DNA from: Vitrella brassicaformis CCMP3155
Taxonomy: Eukaryota > Protista > Chromerida
DNA: 64,000 nt
Direction: 5' to 3'
Assembly (NCBI GenBank): GCA_001179505.1
Contig: CDMY01000400.1
Location: forward strand, 22,599 to 86,598
Under the pieces are notes generated by a model. The model had not been told where the DNA came from and made no database searches. It saw only the letters and a list, made by a program, of their open reading frames with translations. Positions 3,591 to 54,116 of the stretch are shown here, piece after piece. The first letter of the stretch is position 1; each line of letters opens with the position of its first letter. Both the position numbers and the translations under genes were made by a program.

Positions 3591-3953
3591 CTTTGTTCTT
3601 GTCGTTGCAGACAGGAGACCACTGAGGCAGGGATAAGAGAAGGTGGCACGGGAGAGAGGCAGGCGGACGCACAGAGAGATCTGAGTTCGGATGAATTATG
3701 ACGATGGCTGGAAGGATAGATAGAACGGACAGGGAGAGAGAGGCAAAACGGCGGGAGGGGGGAGAGGAGAAAAATCCCTCCCTCCATCCCTCCCTCCTAC
3801 CCTACCCTTAGCCAAGGTATCGTCCCAGATCTTCACTTCCCACCTTCCAGCCTTCCTACTTCCCGCTTCCCTCGGCCTCTCTCTTGGCATCATCACCTTC
3901 ATCCTTCCTCGACGACTTGATCATCGCTCTCTATCGCCCTGTTATCGTCGGCA

Positions 3954-5859
3954 ATGGCTCAGCTTGCGGGAATCGTGTGGACTCTGCTGGTCGCCCTGTC
4001 CCTGGTGGCCAGTCAGCCCTCTGCAAACAAGACGCCCGTGGTTTCCTACAGCACATTCAGCCTGGTGAGTGATGGTGCCGCCAACGACCAGCCGAGTGTC
4101 CGTGCGCTCAGCAGTCCGCCACCGCGTCCAGCTGGTGCAGCTGGCATCCACCGCATAATCGTCAAGCTCAAGCACCCACACACCGAGGGCCTTGCCCGCG
4201 CCGAGACCATCTCGAGGGCACTGCAGGCCTCCCTGTCAGCCGAGACCACCGTGCACACGGCTGAGACGACGGTCCACCACCTCAACAGCTTGTCCATGGA
4301 CGTGGTGGATCTGCCGCTAGGTGTCGATGCAGCGGCCACATGCGAGGCTGCCCTCCTGGCGTCGGATGAGATCGACATCTGCGAGCCGGATGCCGTTGTT
4401 GCGACGGCCTCTGGCCGCAGGCTGCGTGCCCGGGCAGCACAGGAGCCCAACCGCTTCGTGCCCGACGACCCAATCTTCAAGGAGCAGTGGGGGATGGCCA
4501 GCATCGATATGCCCGAGGCGTGGGCCTTCCTGTCTGAGCAGCAGCAGGAGACGGCCAGTGGGGCCGACTCAGTGGGCAAAGGTACGGTGGTCGGGGTGAT
4601 TGACACCGGTGTCGACTACACCCATCCGGACCTCAAGGACGCCATGTGGGTCAATCAAGGCGAGATCGCTGGCAACGGCATCGATGACGACGGTAGGGAT
4701 GCAGGGAGGGAGGGGGGGAGGGAGGGAGGAAGGGACATCCACACACACGATCTGCATGCATTCCTGGGTCTGTATGTGTCTGTGTGCAGGTAACGGCTTT
4801 GTTGATGACATTCACGGCTGGGCCTGGTGCGACGGATCCGAGAACCCGCACATTGGCGACGGCGATCCTATGGATGAGGGTGGCCATGGAACTCACTGTG
4901 CAGGTACCAGAACTCGCCCTCTCTCTTCGCATCATCACCTTGATCCTTCACCGACGACGTGATCACTGTGCAGGTACCATCGCAGCGACTGCCAACAACC
5001 AGGAGGGCATCGCAGGCGTCGCATTTGGCAGAACCAAGATCATAGCACTCAAATTCCTCTGCGGCGAGGTAAGTCGAATAACCATAGGGTCGCGGGGCGC
5101 TCAAATCACATGTCTGTGTGCCCCTACATCAGGATGGTCGGGGTTCCCTTGCTGACGCGGTCCACGCAATCAACTATGCCGTTGCCATGGGGGCCACGCT
5201 AACAAGCAACAGCTGGGGCTACCTTGGGTCTACTGCATACAGGGCGCTCGAGGAGGCCATCAGGGAGGCAGAGGAGGCCGACATGCTGTTCATCGCCGCG
5301 GCTGGCAACGACGACAACGACAATGACGGCCCCAGGAAAGGCTACCCGGCATCATCTGAGCTGGACAGCATCATCAGCGTCGGCGCGGCGACTAGAAATG
5401 GAGAGAAGGCGCCCTTCAGCAACTACGGCCTCGAGAGCGTTGACGTCTTTGCGCCGGGGACGAGAATCTTCTCGACGATGCCCGGTGGCAAGTATGCGGC
5501 AATGGGGGGCACCAGCATGGCAACGCCATTTGTCGCTGGTACGCAAGCACTGAGGACTGCTGTGTGATACCCATTAGACGATCCAATCGACTGTTGGTTT
5601 CTTTGTGACTTCAGGTTTGGCTGCCCTTCTGTGGTCGACGGATCCGGCGCAGAGCTATTGCGACATCAAGCATCGCATTCTGTCGACTTCCGAGAAGATG
5701 GACTCGCTCGAGGGCCTGTGCGTCACGGGGGGCCAGATCAACGCACTGAAGGCCGTCACGTGTGCCGATTGCAAATGGACCCCCACGGAGGAGCCGACGG
5801 CGGCTCCGACGGAAGTTCCCACGCAGGAGCCTACGACGGAGGAGCCGAGTACCCCGTAA
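3954..5859 (+). CDS. Secreted subtilisin-like serine protease (S8), paralog A
   Basis: Exons 3954-4692, 4790-4903, 4974-5068, 5133-5538 and 5615-5859. Contains signal peptide, prodomain, VIDTGVD (Asp), HGTHCAG (His), AAAGND (oxyanion Asn) and GTSMATP (Ser), plus a Thr/Glu/Pro-rich tail (PTEEPTAAPTEVPTQEPT). Confidence 0.95.
4904..4973 (+). other. 70-nt GT-AG intron present only in subtilisin paralog A, flanked by a 17-bp direct repeat
   Basis: tcactgtgcaggtacca occurs at 4893-4909 and 4963-4979. Paralog B (about 50488-50504) has a single copy with no insert. The filler resembles the leader at about 3871-3923 and 49460-49510. Confidence 0.8.
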
Positions 5860-7916
5860 GGGCCCCCACGGCTGGTTCGCTGACGAGAAGCTGCACTGAC
5901 GGCCGGGGGGAAGACTGCCTGCCTGCCTGCCTGCCTGCTGTCTGTAGCGGCGGATATGTATGTGTGTGAATGTCTGCGGCATGTTGGTGTACTGGCTGCA
6001 CTGTCTGTGCTGTGGTGTGGTGTGCTGTGCTCTAGCTTAGTAAGTGAGAGTCGTGTGTAGGTAGTTCTTCGTTCGTTCGTTCATTCGCTGGTCGGCCGGC
6101 AGCGCCGCGCCACTCACTGCCACTCAATGTCTCGCGCAGCCTAGTCGGCTGCATCTGCCCTTCGTTGTGTGTGAATGAAACAGCTCTCTCTCTCTGTGTC
6201 TCTCTCTCTGAATAGCTCTCTTTGTGAATACACTCGTACGTTAGTGCTGTGTTCATGTTCGTGCTTTGCCAAGCCGTCGGTGCACCGAGTTCTGACGCGA
6301 TCCGACGTGAGCTGAGCGGCTTGTTGTCTGTGCATATATGTGCATGTGTGCTGCGATCTGATCATTGGCTGTATAAATTTGTCGATAGCAACTGACTGCA
6401 CTGCACTGCACGCTGATCTGTGCATGTGTACACATTACACATGGGAGGGCGGGGTGGGGGATGGGACGGATAAGAGACCGACGAGAGACACATGCGCACC
6501 ACATATACATACGTCAAGTGAATGATATCATATGATCTATCCAAATGAAAACGAAATTCGGCACTGAGGCGGCTTGACAGCATTAACACACAAACTTGGC
6601 CGGACATGCGCGCAGACGGCCCGTGCTGTCGTTCCATCCATCCATCGCCTGTTCCATGAAAGGACAGTGAGCGACGCACACAGTACAATATGCGCGTCAG
6701 ACAGGCAGACGGGCGAGTGAGTCAACATCAGCCAGAGGGTGGATCGGATCCATCGCCTCTTCTCTATCCCGTGAGGCGTCATCGCCAGCGCCCCTCGCTG
6801 CACACGGGACAATAGAGAGACACGTGATAGCGAATCATCCCGAGGCGACGGGTTTATTGTCACAATCCGCCAAACCAAACAGACGTCTCTCTCCCTCCAT
6901 GCCTTTCCCTCCTCCTCAGCCCATGTAGCTCTTTGCTGCAGGTCCAGCCGCAACTTTTGTCTGCAGTGGATCTCTGACCTCTGGGGCACCTCTCCACCCC
7001 TCCAGCAGGCACGCGACATCGCTCCACCACTGTCTCACACCATGGAATCAGACCTGTGCGCTCCCTTGGTTGATGTGTGTGTCGCTCGCTCTTTCTTTGT
7101 GCAGAGGAGGGCAGGGGCAGCTGGGCCGGGAAGGGTGGGGTGGGATACTTGGTTGATCTTTTGTCGGTTCACACATTCACGTGACAACAACTTGAGGTGG
7201 ACGATGAGCGAGGCCGTTACGTATTTGTGGTGACGATTCATGGTGAAGTGTCCGTTCCTTTGTGTCCCCCAGGTGTCCCCCCAGCGTGTCAGTCATGCGA
7301 TGAAGAGAAACTCACTAGGCCGTCCCCTCCCACACGGAGCAGAAATCCACTACAAATGTACAACAAAGGGCACAGGTGCACTGCGAACTTTGCAGACAGA
7401 CAGACAGGGCACTACCGACACACACATGTGCGTGACAGACAAATGACCGTTTGTGACGAATGTGTGGGTATGCATGTGGTGGCCATAATGATATCATGCC
7501 CACCGCATCCACACCCACACCCACATCAGGCAACATCCACCCTCTCTCAGTCCAGAAAGCACACAAGCACACCACACCCATGATACCAACCCGGTGTTCC
7601 CCAGCCCCTGTCCCCTTCCCCACTTCCCCCACTCGTGTGTCTATTTACATGCTGAAGTCACACACATAACACAGTACACTGACAGGCAAAAGGCACACAC
7701 AACACCACACAACAAAAACTATGCAGTGCAGACGCATAACGCAAACAGCAAGACAGGCCAAGTGCTCTTCACACTTACGCAAACATGCACACACAACACG
7801 CAACAGGCATGCATTCATCTACAGACTTAATGAAAGAACAGTGACGACACATCGGAGGCAGACGAGTGCACAGACGGTGTGGGTCGGATCGAATCAGCTG
7901 ATTGGACCGAGACCTC

Positions 7917-8410
7917 TCAGTACCTCCGGAAGCCTGCACACATGTCCCGGACAGAGAGCTGCCCTGTGTCCTATGTGCTTCTGTCTCATCCCTTACATTT
8001 GTGGCGCCAGCAGCGATAGCCGGACCGGCAATGGCGGTCTTGACGACAATCATGAGGTCCTGCACAGCAAAAACCACAGAAGGGAGGGGTACGTGATGAT
8101 GCTCACTCACTGTCGGGCCAGTCGTGGGTGCGTTGTGGTCGTGCTCACCCAGTGCACGCAGGTTGCCCGACGTCGCAGGCCCGTCCTTCTTCCCTTCATC
8201 CCTCTCATAGGTCTCAGGCTCATCGACCAGCAAGTCCTCTTGTTCATCCACAATCGTCAGGCCAATGTCAGATCCATCAACAGCAGCAGGAGGGGCAGCA
8301 GTAGTGGAAGCGGGAGCAGCAGCTGTGCTGGCCACCGTGGCTGAGGGCATCCACACCGCCACAAGCAGAGAGGCGAAGACAACCAGTGTCAGGCGCGAGA
8401 AGAGAGCCAT
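7917..8410 (-). CDS. Secreted prepropeptide: signal + acidic pro-region + 4-Cys cationic peptide (paralog A)
   Basis: Exons 8410-8149, 8059-7997 and 7933-7917 give MALFSRLTLVVFASLLVAVWMPSAT...DEQEDLLVDEPETYERDEG...SGNLRAL-GPHDCRQDRHCRSGYRCWRHKCFRRY*. Confidence 0.7.
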
Positions 8411-8981
8411 GGACGCTGACGCCCAATCGAGAGCGGTTGAAAGAGAGAGAAGGGGGAACTGATTGATCCATCCCTCCTCCGCGCTCTAACTCTTCCGTGT
8501 AACGAACGTGCATGCTTAACGGCAGCTCTTTCGTCCTCCTTCCCTCTCCCCACCTCCGGCTGAGCCTCGTGCACTGCTCGCAGCATCATCGTATAGAGAG
8601 ATCGGCGGCTTTGTCCTGTTGGTTCCACTCATCAAGGCAAACACGGAGGACAAGAAATCGAAACCTGTCCGCGGCCCCTGATCAAGAAGGAGGGCATATG
8701 TAATCGACCGTCCCAGCGCATGGACACACGGACAATCTTACCCTTAACCACCACCACCCAGAAGGAGGGAGCCGTGTTATCGCTTGAAAGTGGTAGAGGA
8801 GTCAGGTTAAAAGGAACATTTAACCGTGTCTCGGCCCCACCCAATCACGGAAAAACAAGCGTATACACGTCTGTGTAGACAACGCACGCGTCTGTACAAC
8901 GAAACGAAGATGCAGCAGCCAGCTGTATAGACGCCATGCCATGAGCGACCGACAAACACAAAACACACTCTCTCCGCCCAC

Positions 8982-40031: not shown

Positions 40032-40662
40032 TCACCAGCGCGGTCGATAGATACATCGGCAGGGGGGGGCCATGGGACGGCGAGCGCAGCGACGGCGCCA
40101 GCGTCTGCAACGGTCGGTCCAAGGATGGTCCCAGCACCTGTTCTTCATTCTGCGGCAGCGCCTTCGCCCTCCCCCTCCCCGCAGCATTCGCAAGGGGTGC
40201 TCGTCAGAATCCTCTTCGTCATCGTCGTCGTGGTCATCATCATCACCCACCTGGATTCATACACACAAACACCCGCCGACAGGCACGTGGCTGGTCTGTG
40301 CGCGCTCCATGTGTGTGTGTGCGTCTGCGTGAGCTGCATATGTGTGTGTGTGGGTCTGTGTCAGGGCTCCTGCCCACCTCATCTTCATCTTCATCTTCAG
40401 CTTGCAGCATTCCATCTGTGTCGAGATTGTTGTCGGGGATGGCCATGTCATCCTGCACCCACGTGACACCCAAGGGAACGACAGGAGGACAGACGCATGA
40501 CATCCATAGTGACAAAGAGCAGCACAGGTGGCCATGCATCCTTACCGTCAACGGATCAGTGACCGCCGTGGACTCCTGAGCCACCTTGCTCAGCAGGGGT
40601 GTTGGGGCGCCGACAGCACCGGCCAACAGGAGGGCGCCAACGAGGCACAGAAGCAGCTTCAT
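40032..40662 (-). CDS. Secreted prepropeptide: signal + very acidic pro-region + Arg/Cys/Trp-rich peptide
   Basis: Exons 40662-40546, 40452-40378 and 40250-40032 (all phase 0) give MKLLLCLVGALLLAGAVGA...AEDEDEDEVGDDDDHDDDDEEDSDEHPLRMLR-GGGGRRRCRRMKNRCWDHPWTDRCRRWRRRCARRPMAPPCRCIYRPRW*. Confidence 0.75.
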
Positions 40663-41367
40663 GGTGAGCGAGAGAACAGGCAAGAAAACAACAAGGGGAA
40701 GCAAGCCGAGAAGGAATGAAGAATATCTTGAGGTGAGATCTGTTAAGGAGGGATCTGATATTCTTCCCTCTCTCTCCTCTCCTCTCCCTCTCTCCCCTCC
40801 CTCCCTCTTCTCTCCCCTCCCTCCTCTCCCTCCCTCCCTCCCTCCCTCCCNNNNNNNNNNNNNNNNNNNNNNNNNNNNNNNNNNNNNNNNNNNNNNNNNN
40901 NNNNNNNNNNNNNNNNNNNNNNNNNNNNNNNNNNNNNNNNNNNNNNNNNNNNNNNNNNNNNNNNNNNNNNNNNNNNNNNNNNNNNNNNNNNNNNNNNNNN
41001 NNNNNNNNNNNNNNNNNNNNNNNNNNNNNNNNNNNNNNNNNNNNNNNNNNNNNNNNNNNNNNNNNNNNNNNNNNNNNNNNNNNNNNNNNNNNNNNNNNNN
41101 NNNNNNNNNNNNNNNNNNNNNNNNNNNNNNNNNNNNNNNNNNNNNNNNNNCAGGGTGTAGGGTAAGCAACCCTGAGCCCCAAACCCTAACCTCTAAGTTG
41201 TGTTCACCTATGAACCATTCCTCTGTTGGACTCCACGTAAGTCATGAGCTGACGCGTTACAAGCGAATCACACCCTGCGAGGAGTTATACATAGATCCGT
41301 CGTCGGGATCCTGGCCGATGAAACCCTTGACCCCACAAAACCCTGCAGTTTCCTCCTCCCCCCCTAC

Positions 41368-49105: not shown

Positions 49106-49544
49106 CACAATCGGTCGTTGCAGAAGGAAGACGTGAAGGAAGACGAATGATAGGAAGGAGGGGAGGAAAGATGTGAGCTGCGGACGAAGCAAGGATAAGA
49201 TCTGCGGAGAATGCCGATGCCTGCGTCCTCCCCTGGCCTCCCTGCGTTCCCCTCTTGCCCTAACCCATGGCAAGAAACCTATCGACAGTGGTTTCACAGG
49301 GAGTTGAGAGTTAGGGGAGGGAGGGAGGGAGGGGGAGGGAGGGAGGGCTTCCTCTCCATCCCTCCATCCATCCCTCTATCTATCCCTCCATCGGTCAGGC
49401 AAGGTATCGTCCCAGATCTTCACTTCCCACCTTCCACCCTACCTACTTCCCGCTTCCCACGCCCTCTCTCTTCGCATCATCACCGTCATCCTTCACCGAC
49501 GACTTGATCATCGCTCTCTATCGTCTTGTTATTCACTGTCGGCA

Positions 49545-51387
49545 ATGGCTCAGCTTGCGGGAATCGTGTGGACTCTGCTGGTCGCCCTGTCCCTGGTGGC
49601 CTGTCAGCCCTCTGCAAACAAGACGCCCGTGGTTTCCTACAGCACATTCAGCCTGGTGAGTGATGGAGCCGCCAACGACCAGCCGAGTGTCCGTGCGCTC
49701 AGCAGTCCGCCACCGCGTCCAGCTGCTGCAGCTGGCATCCACCGCATCATCGTCAAGCTCAAGCACCCACACACCGAGGGCCTTGCCCGCGCAGAGACCA
49801 TCTCGAGGGCACTGCAGGCCTCCATGTCAGCCGAGACCACCGTGCACACGGCTGAGACGACGGTCCACCACCTCAACAGCTTGTCCATGGACGTGGTGGA
49901 TCTGCCGCTAGGTGTCGATGCAGCGGCCACATGCGAGGCTGCCCTCCTGGCGTCGGATGAGATCGACATCTGCGAGCCGGATGCCGTTGTTGCGACGGCC
50001 TCTGGCCGAAGGCTGCGCGCCCGGGCAGCACAGGAGCCCAACCGCTTCGTGCCCGACGACCCAATCTTCAAGGAGCAGTGGGGGATGGCCAGCATCGATA
50101 TGCCCGAGGCGTGGGCCTTCCTGTCTGAGCAGCAGCAGGAGACGGACAGTGGGGCCGACTCAGTGGGCAAAGGTACGGTGGTCGGGGTGATTGACACCGG
50201 TGTCGACTACACCCATCCGGACCTCAAGGACGCCATGTGGGTCAATCAAGGCGAGATCGTTGGCAACGGCATCGATGACGACGGTAGGTCCCGAGGGAGG
50301 GAGGGAGGGAGGGAGGATGCAGGAAGAGACATTCACACACACGATCTGCATGCATTCCTTGGTCTGTATGTGTCTGTGTGCAGGTAACGGCTTTGTTGAT
50401 GACATTCACGGCTGGGCCTGGTGCGACGGATCCGAGAACCCGCACATTGGCGACGGCGATCCTATGGATGAGGGTGGCCATGGAACTCACTGTGCAGGTA
50501 CCATCGCGGCGACTGCCAACAACCAGGAGGGCATCGCAGGCGTCGCATTTGGCAGAACCAAGATCATGGCACTCAAATTCCTCTGCGGCGAGGTAGGTCG
50601 AGTAAACATAGGGGCGCGGGGCGCTGAAATCACATGTCTGTGTGCGGCTACATCAGGATGGTCGGGGTTACACTGCTGACGCGGTCCACGCAATCAACTA
50701 TGCCGTTGCCATGGGGGCCACGCTCACAAGCAACAGCTGGGGCTCCCTTGGGTCTAGAGCACATCCAGGGCTCGAGGAGGCCATCAGGAAGGCAGAGGAG
50801 GCGAACATGCTTTTCGTCGCCGCGGCTGGCAACGACGACAACGACAATGACGGCCCCAGGAAAGGCTACCCGGCATCATCTGAGCTGGACAGCGTCATCA
50901 GCGTCGGCGCGTCGAATAAGGAAGGAGAGAAGGCGTGGTTCAGCAACTACGGCCTCGAGAGCGCTGACGTGTTTGCGCCGGGGACGAGAATCGCCTCGAC
51001 GATGCCCGGTGGCAAGTATGCGAAAATGCAGGGCACCAGCATGGCAACGCCATTCGTTGCTGGTACGCAAGCACTGAGGACTGCAGTCTGTGTGATACCC
51101 ATTAGACGATCCACTCAATCGCTGCTTTGTCTGTGACTTCAGGTTTGGCTGCCCTTCTGTGGTCGACGGATCCGGCGCAGAGCTATCGCGACATCAAGCA
51201 TCGCATTCTGTCGACTTCCGAGAAGATGGACTCGCTCGAGGGCCTGTGCGTCACGGGGGGCCAGGTCAACGCACTGAAGGCCGTCACGTGTGCCGATTGC
51301 AAATGGACCCCCACGGAGGAGCCGACGGCGGCTCCGACGGAAGCCCCCACGCAGGAGCCTACGACGGAGGAGCCGGGGACCCCGTAA
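49545..51387 (+). CDS. Secreted subtilisin-like serine protease (S8), paralog B
   Basis: Exons 49545-50283, 50384-50592, 50657-51062 and 51143-51387. Intact D/H/N/S motifs; lacks the extra intron seen in paralog A. Confidence 0.95.
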
Positions 51388-53407
51388 GGGCCCCCCACGG
51401 CTGGTTCGCTGACGAGAAGCTGCACTGACGGCCGGGGGGAAGACTGCCTGCCTGCCTGCTGTCTGTAACGGCGTATATGTATGTGTGTGTATGTCTGCGG
51501 CATGTTGGTGTACTGACTGCACTGTCTGTGCTGTGGTGTGCTGTGGTTTGCTGTGCTCTAGCTTAGTAAGTGAGAGTCGTGTGTAGGTAGTTCTTCGTTC
51601 GTTCGTTCATTCGCTGGTCGGCCGGCAGCGCCGCGCCACTGACTGCCACTCACTGTTTTGCGCAGCCTAGTCGGCTGCATCTGCCCTTCGTCGTGTGTGA
51701 ATGAAACAGCTCTCTCTCTGTCTGTCTCTCTGTCTGTCTCTCTCTGAATAGCTCTCATTGTGCATACACTCGTACGTTAGTGCTGTGTTCATGTTGGTGC
51801 TTTGCCAAGCCGTCGGTGCACCGAGTTCTGACGCGACCCGACGTGAGCTGAGCGGCTTGTTGTCGTCTGTGTATGCGTGTGTGCTGTGATCTGATCATTG
51901 GCTGTATAAATTTGTCGATAGCAAGTGACTGCACTGCACTGCACGCTGATCTGTGCATGTGTACATATTACACATGGGATGGTGGGTTGGGGTGGGGTGG
52001 GATGGGAGGGACAAGAGACCGGCGAGAGACACATGCGCACCACACATACATACGTCAAGTGAATGATATGACATGAGATTTCCAAATGAGAACGAAATTC
52101 GCGCACTGAGGCGGCTTGACAATACTCACATACAAACTTGGCCGGACATGTACGTACGTACGCATGCATATGTACACACACAGATGGATGGCCCATGCTG
52201 TCGTTCCATCCATCCATCGCCTGTTCCATGAAAGGACAGTGATCGACGCGACGCGCACAGCACAATATGCGCATCAGACAGGCAGACGGGCGAGTGAGTC
52301 AACATCAGTCAGGGGGTGGATCGGATCCATCGCCTCTTCTCTATCCTGTGAGGGATCTGATACGTGTCTCATGATCATAGCGAGGGACAATAGAGAGACA
52401 CCGTGATAGCGAATCATCCCGAGGCGCCGGGTTTATTGTCACAATCCGTCAAACCAAACAGACGTCTCTCTCCCTCCATGCCTTTCCCTCCTCCTCCTCA
52501 GCCCATGTAGCTCTTTGCTGTGTCGGCAGGTCCAGCCGCAGCTTTTGTCTGCAGTGGATCTCTGCAGGGGAGGGCAGGGGCTGGGACACCTCTCCACCCC
52601 ACCAGGGCAGGGGCTGGGCCGGGAAGGGTGGGGTGGGATACTTGGTTGATCTTTTGTCGGTTCACACATTCACGTGACAACAACTTGAGGTGGACGATGA
52701 GCGAGGCCGTTACGTATTTGTGGTGACTTCATGGTGAAGTGTCCGTTCCTTCGTGTCCCCCAGGTGTCGCCCCAGCATGTCAGTCATGCGATGAACAGAA
52801 ACTCACTACGGCCCTCCCCTCCCACACGGAGCAGAAATCCACTACAAATGTACAACAAAGGGCACAGGTGCACTGCGAACTTTGCAGACAGACAGACAGA
52901 CAGGGCACTACCAACACACACATGTGCGTGACAGCCAAATGACCGTATGTGACGAATGTGTGGGTATGCATGTGGTGGCCATAATGATATCATGCCCACC
53001 GCATCCACACCCACACCCACACCAGGCAATATCCACCCCTCTCTCAGTCCAGACAGCACACAAGCACACCACACCCATGATATCAACCCGGTGTTCCCAG
53101 CCCCTGTTCCCTTCCCCACTTCCCCCACTCGTGTGTCTATTTACATGGTGAGTGAAGTCACACACAACACAACACAGTACACAGACAGGCAAAGGGCAGA
53201 GCGCCACACGCAACACGCCAGTCGACTAGTCAGTGATGGACATGACTCAGTACAAACAACACGTTTAATCAAAGAACAGTGAGTGACGCACACACATCAC
53301 AGCACAACACATCACATCACATGACGACGTGACATCGCATCACAGGCAGACGAGTGAGGGAAAGTGAGTGAAGTGCAGCCAGGGTGTGGATCAATCAGAC
53401 GGGCGGC

Positions 53408-54116
53408 TCAGTGCTTCTTGCCTGAATGAAAGGAGGAAGAGAAATGGGACACAAATTCGTGTGTGTACATATCAAAGGAGGTTGGCGCGTGTGTTGGTGT
53501 GGACATCTTGCCTTGCCGCCGCACTTACATTTCCCCCCCCACCACTTCTTCTTGCAATAATAGCCAGGGAAGCACTCGGAGTCGTGCTTGCACTTCTTGT
53601 GGTGCTTGTGCTTGCCTGAAAGCAACATAAGTAAAGGGTGGATTCGCCGTCAGACTGTCTCCCTGCCTGTCTGCCTGTCTGCCTGTCTGTCCCACTTACA
53701 TTTCCCCCATTTCTTCCCCCACTTCTTCTTGCAGTATTTGCCATGGGAACAGTCGGAGTCGTCCTCGCACTTGTGGCCTGCACACCACACACCACACAGA
53801 AGGGAGGAATCGAGATGATGCCCCCTGTCACTGGGTGCGTTGTGGTCGGTTGCTTACCCAGTGCACGCAGGCTGCCCGACGTCGCAGCCTCGTCATCCTC
53901 GTCCTCATCGTCGGCATCGACCACGTGGGCATCGTTGGCATAGACCAGGAAGTCCTCCTCGTCCAGCTCATCCACAGTCGCCAGGCCATTGTCAGCAGTA
54001 GTGGGAGCAGCAGTTGTGGTGCAGGGTGCCTTGCCCGCCATGGTGGCTGAGGGCATCCACACCGCCACCAGCAGAGAGGCGAGGACAACCAGTGTCAGGC
54101 GCGAGAAGAGAGCCAT
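53408..54116 (-). CDS. Secreted prepropeptide: signal + acidic pro-region + two 4-Cys Lys/Trp/His-rich modules (paralog B)
   Basis: Exons 54116-53858, 53777-53700, 53615-53529 and 53421-53408 give ...DDEDEDDEAATSGSLRAL-GHKCEDDSDCSHGKYCKKKWGKKWGKCKHKHHKKCKHDSECFPGYYCKKKWWGGKCKKH*. Confidence 0.75.

Follow-up and report, generated by a model that had tools for sequence, protein, structure and literature searches.

Introduction

Defensins, cathelicidins, the products of frog dermaseptin-type genes and conotoxins are cationic defence peptides or toxins that are made as prepropeptide precursors with a conserved leader. In the micro-exon genes of schistosomes, a conserved first exon that bears the signal and a conserved last exon accompany short symmetric internal exons, which can be duplicated or swapped. 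Here we describe two genes of Vitrella brassicaformis CCMP3155, a close free-living relative of the apicomplexans, located on a 64,000-nucleotide stretch of contig CDMY01000400.1 (positions 22,599 to 86,598; this whole stretch is referred to as the window). Gene A (7917-8410) and its paralog gene B (53408-54116), both on the minus strand, combine a signal peptide, an acidic pro-piece and a basic, Cys-framed cargo, and an earlier note on this DNA had presented them as a hidden family of antimicrobial or toxin-like peptides with the precursor architecture of defensins and conotoxins. Chromerids are photosynthetic, coral-associated relatives of the malaria and Toxoplasma parasites, and our literature search returned no paper that deals with antimicrobial or cysteine-rich secreted peptides in Vitrella, with chromerid defence or competition peptides, or with a chromerid pro-peptide processing code.

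As in the defence-peptide and toxin prepropeptides, the Vitrella family couples a signal with an anionic pro-piece that balances a cationic cargo, carries leader and cargo on separate exons, and joins one leader to both Cys-framed and Cys-free Arg/Trp/His-rich cargo classes. It differs from them in showing no homology, in having a junction (S-G-x-L-R-x-L) that is not dibasic, in the purifying selection that acts on its cargo, and in the membrane anchor or acidic nature of some members. Its architecture is that of the well-known shared-leader prepropeptide in a variant form, distinguished by an R-x-L junction, cargo on phase-1 micro-exons, a total of four cargo classes and pro-pieces scaled in charge. 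The exon plan is that of the schistosome micro-exon genes, albeit in a different organism group and with no homology, and there is no sign in the Vitrella family of alternative splicing as a source of variation. With regard to the junction, the pro-domains of diatom biosilica wall proteins contain an RXL domain which is removed by a yet unknown protease (PMC5525289); the order of signal, pro-domain ending in R-x-L and functional region is the same in Vitrella, again with no sequence homology. The PEXEL/TEXEL motif, RxLxE/Q/D (or RRL), is located soon after the signal peptide and is cut by a plasmepsin V/ASP5-type protease (PMC8540915), whereas the Vitrella motif lies about 60 residues past the signal cut and 60-80 residues from the N-terminus, its position 5 is P or H (R-A-L-G-P, R-A-L-G-H), and no R-R-L is present in gene A or gene B.

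Results and Discussion

Genes A and B are very likely members of a family of about 12 modular secretory-pathway protein genes that is specific to the Vitrella lineage. Whole-genome searches, which covered 72.7 Mb in 1,064 contigs, located 11 loci by DNA and profile searches with the leader, and a profile of the Cys module added one more. Four of these loci (L025, L004, gene A and gene B) are carried by the 86.6-kb contig from which the window was taken. In the layout of genes A and B a shared leader exon is followed by interchangeable, mostly phase-1 cargo exons and by a tiny terminal exon encoding a basic tail, and the family as a whole falls into four groups according to cargo. The first comprises gene A, gene B and L004, in which ...S-G-N/S-L-R-A-L is immediately followed by a phase-1 intron and then by one, two and about nine 4-Cys micro-exon modules, respectively. 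The second (L003 and L005) has a leader in common with A and B and a Cys-free cargo of Gly-Arg-Trp repeats and His runs. In the third, subfamily II (L006, L007, L008, L020 and L021), the junction reads S-S-G-G-L-R-G-L with no intron at that point, and the cargo consists of a knottin-spaced 6-Cys module, two 4-Cys modules and a His/Asp-rich linker; P0004, the public 267-amino acid protein of L006, ends in a transmembrane helix. The fourth (L009 and L025) retains the family signal peptide without a pro-piece, and an acidic 4-Cys module precedes a transmembrane segment. In L003 (1067-1267, minus strand) and L005 (1900-2087, plus strand), the donors proposed after L-R-A-L-Q-R are non-consensus (GTCAGC and GTTAGC), and the join to the Gly-Arg-Trp exon is a proposed one.

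When the leader profile was run with HMMER against 1.84 billion representative proteins, the matches were P0001, P0002, P0003 (from an environmental Vitrella-like contig) and P0004, together with one weak match to an unrelated repeat protein, and none was obtained in other organisms, Chromera included. As the leader matches are to Vitrella or Vitrella-like sequences only, the family appears to be confined to the Vitrella lineage. An environmental metagenome contig, L023 (ENA ERZ893784, k147_4753463), matches the L005 locus with 91% identity, its Gly-Arg-Trp/His cargo still in frame, which points to a Vitrella-like organism in that sample. Whole-protein searches used the database records P0001, P0002 and P0004, while for the other paralogs both reading and searching proceeded one exon at a time.

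In quantitative terms, a neutralising pro-piece is supported most strongly by the matching of charge across the family. Net charge was taken as Lys plus Arg minus Asp plus Glu, summed for unannotated paralogs over exon pieces with cargo limits of our own reading. The pro-piece and cargo carry -9 and +6 in gene A, -15 and +13 in gene B, -26 and +21 in L003, -25 and +24 in L005 and -35 and +18 in L004, while the corresponding values are -8 to -15 and +6 to +7 in L007, L008, L020 and L021 of subfamily II. For L006, a pro-piece of -8 accompanies a cargo of +3 in its Cys-rich part, or of -17 when the whole P0004 ectodomain is counted. In L009 and L025 the cargo is acidic (-9 and -5) and the pro-piece is absent. 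Across seven phylogenetically independent groups the acidity of the pro-piece follows the charge of the cargo with a Spearman coefficient of 0.96, or 0.93 with the whole P0004 ectodomain, and an exact one-sided p of 0.001-0.003. The family therefore exhibits the anionic pro-piece balancing a cationic cargo that characterizes prepropeptides, and the neutralising role which the earlier note had given to the pro-piece is strengthened, both by this scaling and by the loss of the pro-piece where the cargo is acidic. The isoelectric point (pI) is 4.05 for the pro-pieces of both A and B, and 9.9 and 9.55 for their respective cargos.

Gene A is composed of three exons that encode a product of 113 amino acids. 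Exon 1 (8410-8149) specifies the signal peptide and pro-piece and ends with ...SGNLRAL plus one base, i.e. in phase 1. The signal peptide of 27 codons (8330-8410) has an Arg in the n-region, a hydrophobic core of about 14 residues and small residues before the predicted cut, which would separate ..ATVA from S. Signal-peptide calls were made by inspection on these three properties (n-region Arg, about 14 hydrophobic residues, small residues at -3/-1), and by this assessment an endoplasmic reticulum (ER) signal peptide of the kind found in defensin- and conotoxin-type prepropeptides is present. Plastid targeting was considered and rejected, as the region after the signal is strongly acidic and unlike a transit peptide. 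The acidic pro-piece (8171-8329) is predicted to be disordered; over its whole 60 residues, the junction included, it contains 13 Asp/Glu against 4 Lys/Arg. It is followed by the junction motif S-G-N-L-R-A-L (8150-8170), a proposed processing or sorting site of the R-x-L kind. Intron 1 (8060-8148; GTGAGC...GTGCAG) is a phase-1 GT..AG intron in agreement with the public model P0001. The basic cargo exon 2 (7997-8059) encodes one 4-Cys module, C-x5-C-x2-G-x2-C-x4-C, of which it supplies three Cys and the first base of the fourth Cys codon; this codon is split by intron 2 (7934-7996; GTAAGG...GTGCAG, GT..AG, phase 1) and is finished by the terminal micro-exon 3 (7917-7933), which adds F-R-R-Y before the TGA stop at 7919-7917. 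Similar basic tails (KKH, RRH, QRR) occur in paralogs. Nine bases inside intron 2 a stop codon is present (7986-7996, minus strand, TGT AAG GRA TGA), which is conserved in the repeat units of L004; owing to this stop within the donor of the cargo exon, the 4-Cys peptide would remain complete if the intron were retained, with C-K-G (as in gene A) or C-K-E at its end.

Searched against a protein word index, exon 1 retrieved P0001, a public V. brassicaformis CCMP3155 protein of 113 amino acids that equals spliced gene A letter for letter, and P0002 (145 amino acids, same strain) is likewise identical to the model of gene B. The spliced structures proposed in the earlier note were thus correct, although the genes can hardly be called hidden: both are already in the public annotation, where automatic naming in UniProt has yielded 'Dickkopf N-terminal cysteine-...' and 'WAP domain-containing protein', and yet they are uncharacterised. 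That annotation was produced by Augustus, which took intron hints from strand-specific RNA-seq (PMC4501334). With four exons (53408-54116), gene B follows the plan of gene A with two cargo exons in place of one. Its exon 1 (53858-54116) encodes the signal, the acidic pro-piece and S-G-S-L-R-A-L, exons 2 (53700-53777) and 3 (53529-53615) each encode a 4-Cys module, and the terminal coding micro-exon (53408-53421) finishes a Cys codon and adds K-K-H and the stop, with a 3' untranslated region (UTR) that extends to about 53006. A 1,224-nucleotide contig from JGI sample 3300017148 (L011) holds the 145-amino acid open reading frame (ORF) of gene B uninterrupted and aligns to the window in four blocks (54261-53857, 53778-53695, 53615-53524 and 53421-53006), the ends of which are the predicted splice sites, thereby confirming all three introns. 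The last 240 or so nucleotides of this contig (986-1224) are not colinear with the window, which a 3'-UTR intron or a chimeric assembly may explain.

The junctions of the earlier note consequently have transcript support for gene B, but not for gene A, for which no transcript was found by exact-product look-up, by a leader-profile scan of metagenome and transcriptome contigs, with a 25-nucleotide exon 1 pattern or with the unspliced 211-amino acid ORF, in collections that may lack Vitrella's own records; owing to this possible gap the blank searches are no proof of absence. Support for gene A is indirect and comprises the public model, canonical splice sites, intron phases as in gene B and homology to L004, the repeated exon-intron unit of which corresponds to exon 2 plus intron 2 of gene A in donor, acceptor and the first 30 intron bases. 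The unspliced 211-amino acid ORF was rejected as the gene A product, as it loses the Cys framework and conflicts with both the public model and the gene B transcript.

The signal peptides of A and B match at 25 of 27 residues, as near-identical as the earlier note had described them, and its acidic pro-region ending in LRAL is equally present in both genes. S-G-x-L-R-x-L is invariant in all eight aligned leaders, while the acidic middle part of the pro-piece is free to vary, in length as in sequence. Junction codons vary synonymously between paralogs (CGT/CGC/CGG for Arg, CTG/CTT/TTG for Leu), indicating that the signal peptide and the junction are constrained at the protein level. In subfamily II the intron is missing at this point, so that its presence or absence varies within one family, and as the motif is kept with or without a following intron it must be more than a splice signal. 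The first 25 or so nucleotides of intron 1 are conserved among gene A (8120-8148, minus strand), gene B (53828-53857, minus strand) and L004 (1826-1855), and less strictly in L003 and L005. Immediately ahead of the start codon of gene A, the 5'-UTR element CTCGATTG...CGTCAGC (8411-8431, minus strand) has a single exact match in the window, and comparison of the upstream 25 nucleotides of 11 loci revealed an element CTC[GA]ATTG ... CCGTCAGC located 5-25 nucleotides upstream of the ATG in L002-L009, L020 and L021, i.e. in most paralogs.

In a six-frame reading of the window, an acidic stretch followed by L-R-x-L occurs at exactly three places, namely gene A, gene B and a gene at 40035-40662 (minus strand). 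The latter has another signal peptide, an Asp/Glu/His-rich stretch, L-R-M-L and a 49-residue Arg/Cys/Trp-rich tail, and no paralog of it was found in the genome, where it is single copy. Directly upstream of it, after a long CT-rich tract, an assembly gap (run of N) begins at 40851. The recurrence of the order acidic stretch, L-R-x-L and cationic tail in this unrelated gene suggests a general signal in this organism, beyond an inherited family trait, and is the main hint that S-G-x-L-R-x-L, through its R-x-L, may mark a maturation site of general use in the chromerid secretory pathway, at which a protease specific for R-x-L (of the plasmepsin V/ASP5 type, or the co-located subtilases described below) would cut, a wider proposal that we regard as unlikely.

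The cargo is less variable than had been claimed. The spacing C-x5-C-x5-C-xn-C and the cationic character reported for the short peptides of A and B were both reproduced, but the mature sequences are not otherwise unrelated: in an alignment of the 4-Cys modules from A, B, subfamily II and L009, the positions C1, D4, C7, G10 and C13 are invariant and the identity to the gene A module is 29-35%, and the consensus for A and B is C-x2-D-x2-C-x2-G-x2-C-x(4-10)-C, with one copy in A and two in B. By the Nei-Gojobori method, the ratio of nonsynonymous to synonymous substitution rates (dN/dS) of the leader was 0.09-0.31 in subfamily II and 0.8-0.9 in the Arg-Trp (RW) group; that of the cargo was 0-0.49 in the exons of subfamily II and about 0.3 in the RW group. 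Cargo values well below 1 indicate purifying selection within subfamilies, so that the mature region is not hypervariable in the sense of the earlier note, the diversifying selection expected of such a region is not seen, and the genes differ through which and how many cargo exons they carry, that is by swapping and duplication to the exclusion of hypermutation. Conotoxin-like hypermutation was accordingly rejected. The analogy to defensin and conotoxin precursors therefore stands for the succession of signal, acidic pro-piece and cationic cargo across the family of about 12 loci, but extends neither to hypervariability nor to homology, as Pfam and sequence searches found no relationship of A or B to defensin or conotoxin families.

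Comparison with known folds gave only weak matches. Nothing significant was returned from Pfam for P0001 or for single exons, whereas the two modules of P0002 together score 33.4 bits for Dickkopf_N (PF04706) against a cut-off of 25; in a genome scan for this family only the gene B exon responded, with 24 bits, and gene B has 8 of the 10 Dickkopf_N cysteines. Matches of P0002 to Squash, LEAP-2 and tachystatin were below threshold, and Pfam DUF7107 had no match in the genome. A sequence search of the PDB yielded only DKK4 (E 0.03). Models predicted by AlphaFold2 (AF2) without an alignment show a helical signal and disorder over the pro-piece, followed by a cargo modelled with confidence (predicted local distance difference test, pLDDT, 77-89) that contains beta-hairpins: in gene A residues 2-20 form a helix (pLDDT 82-85) and residues 102-105 and 108-111 a hairpin (pLDDT 77-79), and in gene B there is one hairpin per module (cargo pLDDT 78-89). 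The best Foldseek match was 5o57, the N-terminal region of DKK4 (E 0.065), followed by DKK1, a double-knottin toxin and mamba intestinal toxin 1, and the best VIA match was 3s2k_C (DKK1; Z 3.9, root-mean-square deviation 5.5 over 57 residues). The nearest structures are thus DKK1/DKK4, double inhibitor cystine knot (ICK) toxins and tachystatin B, all as weak matches, while single modules superpose on knottin hairpins with a deviation of 1-1.4 Å over 21-28 residues. In the ESM Atlas, P0001 lies nearest to precursors of spider toxins and of LEAP-2, with values of 0.75-0.84 that are often attained by shuffled proteins as well; these neighbours represent a lead only.

The disulfide-directed hairpin (DDH) consensus places four Cys, paired in two disulfides, about a beta-hairpin core of C-x2-[G/P]-x2-C. 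The modules of A and B show this spacing together with the invariant Gly and are predicted to form a hairpin, although the last loop of gene A measures only four residues; their C-x5-C-x2-G-x2-C-xn-C spacing and predicted beta-hairpin are what they share with DDH, ICK, colipase and Dickkopf folds. A published description of the colipase/prokineticin fold treats it as a tandem pair of disulfide-directed hairpins (bioRxiv 10.1101/485722); gene B resembles such a pair, and gene A a single unit. The inhibitor cystine knot requires six Cys spaced CX3-7CX3-8CX0-7CX1-4CX4-13C (PMC4942781), whereas the modules of A and B have four Cys each, and in the family the first module of subfamily II alone comes near this spacing (C-x8-C-x5/6-CC-x3-C-x4-C). 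As modelled, the modules of A and B may form a small two-disulfide hairpin that is knottin- or Dickkopf-like, for which no family membership is claimed, and their resemblance to small disulfide-rich folds is likely to be convergent or too short to judge.

The explanation that best accounts for these observations as a whole, and to which we give about an even chance, is a leader family of charge-masked, junction-cut cationic peptides that act outside the cell. The precursors would enter the ER co-translationally by means of the shared signal peptide, the basic cargo would be masked and neutralised by the acidic pro-piece during transit, and a protease of the secretory pathway would cut at or just after R-x-L. 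This would release a peptide of 26 residues (3.4 kDa, pI 9.9) from gene A and one of 59 residues (7.1 kDa) from gene B, which may then act outside the cell on microbial or other anionic surfaces in defence or competition. For the proteolytic step at the junction, taken by itself, the arguments for and against appear to us evenly balanced, and an antimicrobial or toxin-like activity is possible though rather doubtful. Several points weigh against this explanation. Cleavage, secretion and activity are steps that we infer; the junctions contain no classical dibasic convertase site, and cutting at R-x-L is argued by analogy with diatom RXL domains and PEXEL/TEXEL. The gene A transcript was not recovered in the collections named above, the cargo exon limits of L003-L008, L020 and L021 are putative ones from our own reading of each exon, and all fold matches are below significance (best Foldseek E 0.065, best VIA Z 3.9). 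In addition, P0004, L009 and L025 have a transmembrane helix or long His/Asp-rich acidic regions and L004 has about nine tandem modules, and such membrane-anchored or multi-module members resemble free peptides less than they do surface or structural proteins; for them one of the rival readings may be the better description.

Among these rivals, the family may encode polycationic proteins with a structural or surface-bound role in the wall of the cell or sporangium, or else the contents of a secretory organelle. Their Cys modules would cross-link or bind anionic wall polymers, and the pro-piece would do no more than keep them soluble until they are deposited. The tandem modules of L004, the membrane anchors of L006/P0004, L009 and L025, the conserved cargo that shows no diversification and the adjoining secreted subtilases would all be accommodated, and a signal, an acidic domain ending in R-x-L and a polycationic region is the layout of diatom wall-protein precursors (PMC5525289). 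However, the gene A product, with 26 residues and a single module, is short for a cross-linker, and no observation in this analysis places family proteins in the wall, leading us to consider such a role rather unlikely for the family as a whole. Retention of the pro-piece in all cationic members, and a motif that lacks a classical convertase site and would suit receptor-mediated sorting equally well, could also be accounted for if the proteins remained uncleaved and bipolar (acidic-basic), for instance for self-association or coacervation, with S-G-x-L-R-x-L as a sorting or binding motif. The pro-piece of the RW subgroup is, however, near neutral in its evolution (dN/dS 0.8-0.9), which better fits a disposable spacer than a functional half of the mature protein, and uncleaved proteins of this type are in our view quite improbable.

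Chelation of Zn, Cu, Ni or Fe by Cys/His-rich cargo, making these metal-binding or metal-buffering secreted proteins, draws on the 15-18 His in the cargo of L003 and subfamily II and on the 24 His, with HHDD-type repeats, in the P0004 ectodomain; gene A, on the other hand, has 3 His and holds its four Cys in a disulfide-type framework with a predicted hairpin, and as the charge matching is also left unexplained we hold this to be very unlikely. Finally, as neither a gene A transcript nor a second database record was found (where, as stated, Vitrella's own records may be lacking), gene A could be an unexpressed or decaying copy and its public model merely an ab initio prediction. Its frame, splice sites, Cys framework and terminal micro-exon are nevertheless intact, its exon-intron unit is homologous to that of L004, and the Vitrella annotation made use of RNA-seq intron hints (PMC4501334); we hold such a silent or decaying copy to be highly improbable.

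With one leader, four cargo types, a junction motif that does not vary and pro-pieces matched in charge to the cargo, the 12 genes offer a compact and testable system for the maturation and deployment of secreted cationic peptides, and they could show whether R-x-L-type cleavage, which is central to apicomplexan protein export and to the maturation of diatom wall proteins, predates parasitism. Even if its members are merely components of the wall or surface, the family is a clear case of diversification through the swapping and duplication of symmetric micro-exons.

Genomic context

A subtilase (Peptidase_S8) gene (3954-5567, plus strand) is convergent with gene A, and a copy of it adjoins gene B. 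The segments 3774-7695 and 49358-53198 are 88-96% identical and contain, besides this subtilase gene, the distal part of the peptide gene's 3' UTR, in which the tract ends. Between the leaders of A and B the identity is no more than 76%, and the cargo region falls outside the alignment. A and B are therefore paralogs of greater age than the duplication or conversion tract at whose edge they lie. The idea of a cassette replacement inside a young duplication was softened on the same two grounds, the end of the tract in the distal 3' UTR and the divergence of the leaders. Subtilase genes are located within about 3 kb of A, B and L009 (for L009, G000:C286:87300-88280 versus 89402), and the three best-scoring subtilase loci genome-wide are all on contigs with family members, a hint, and no more than that, of a link between the subtilases and the peptide genes.

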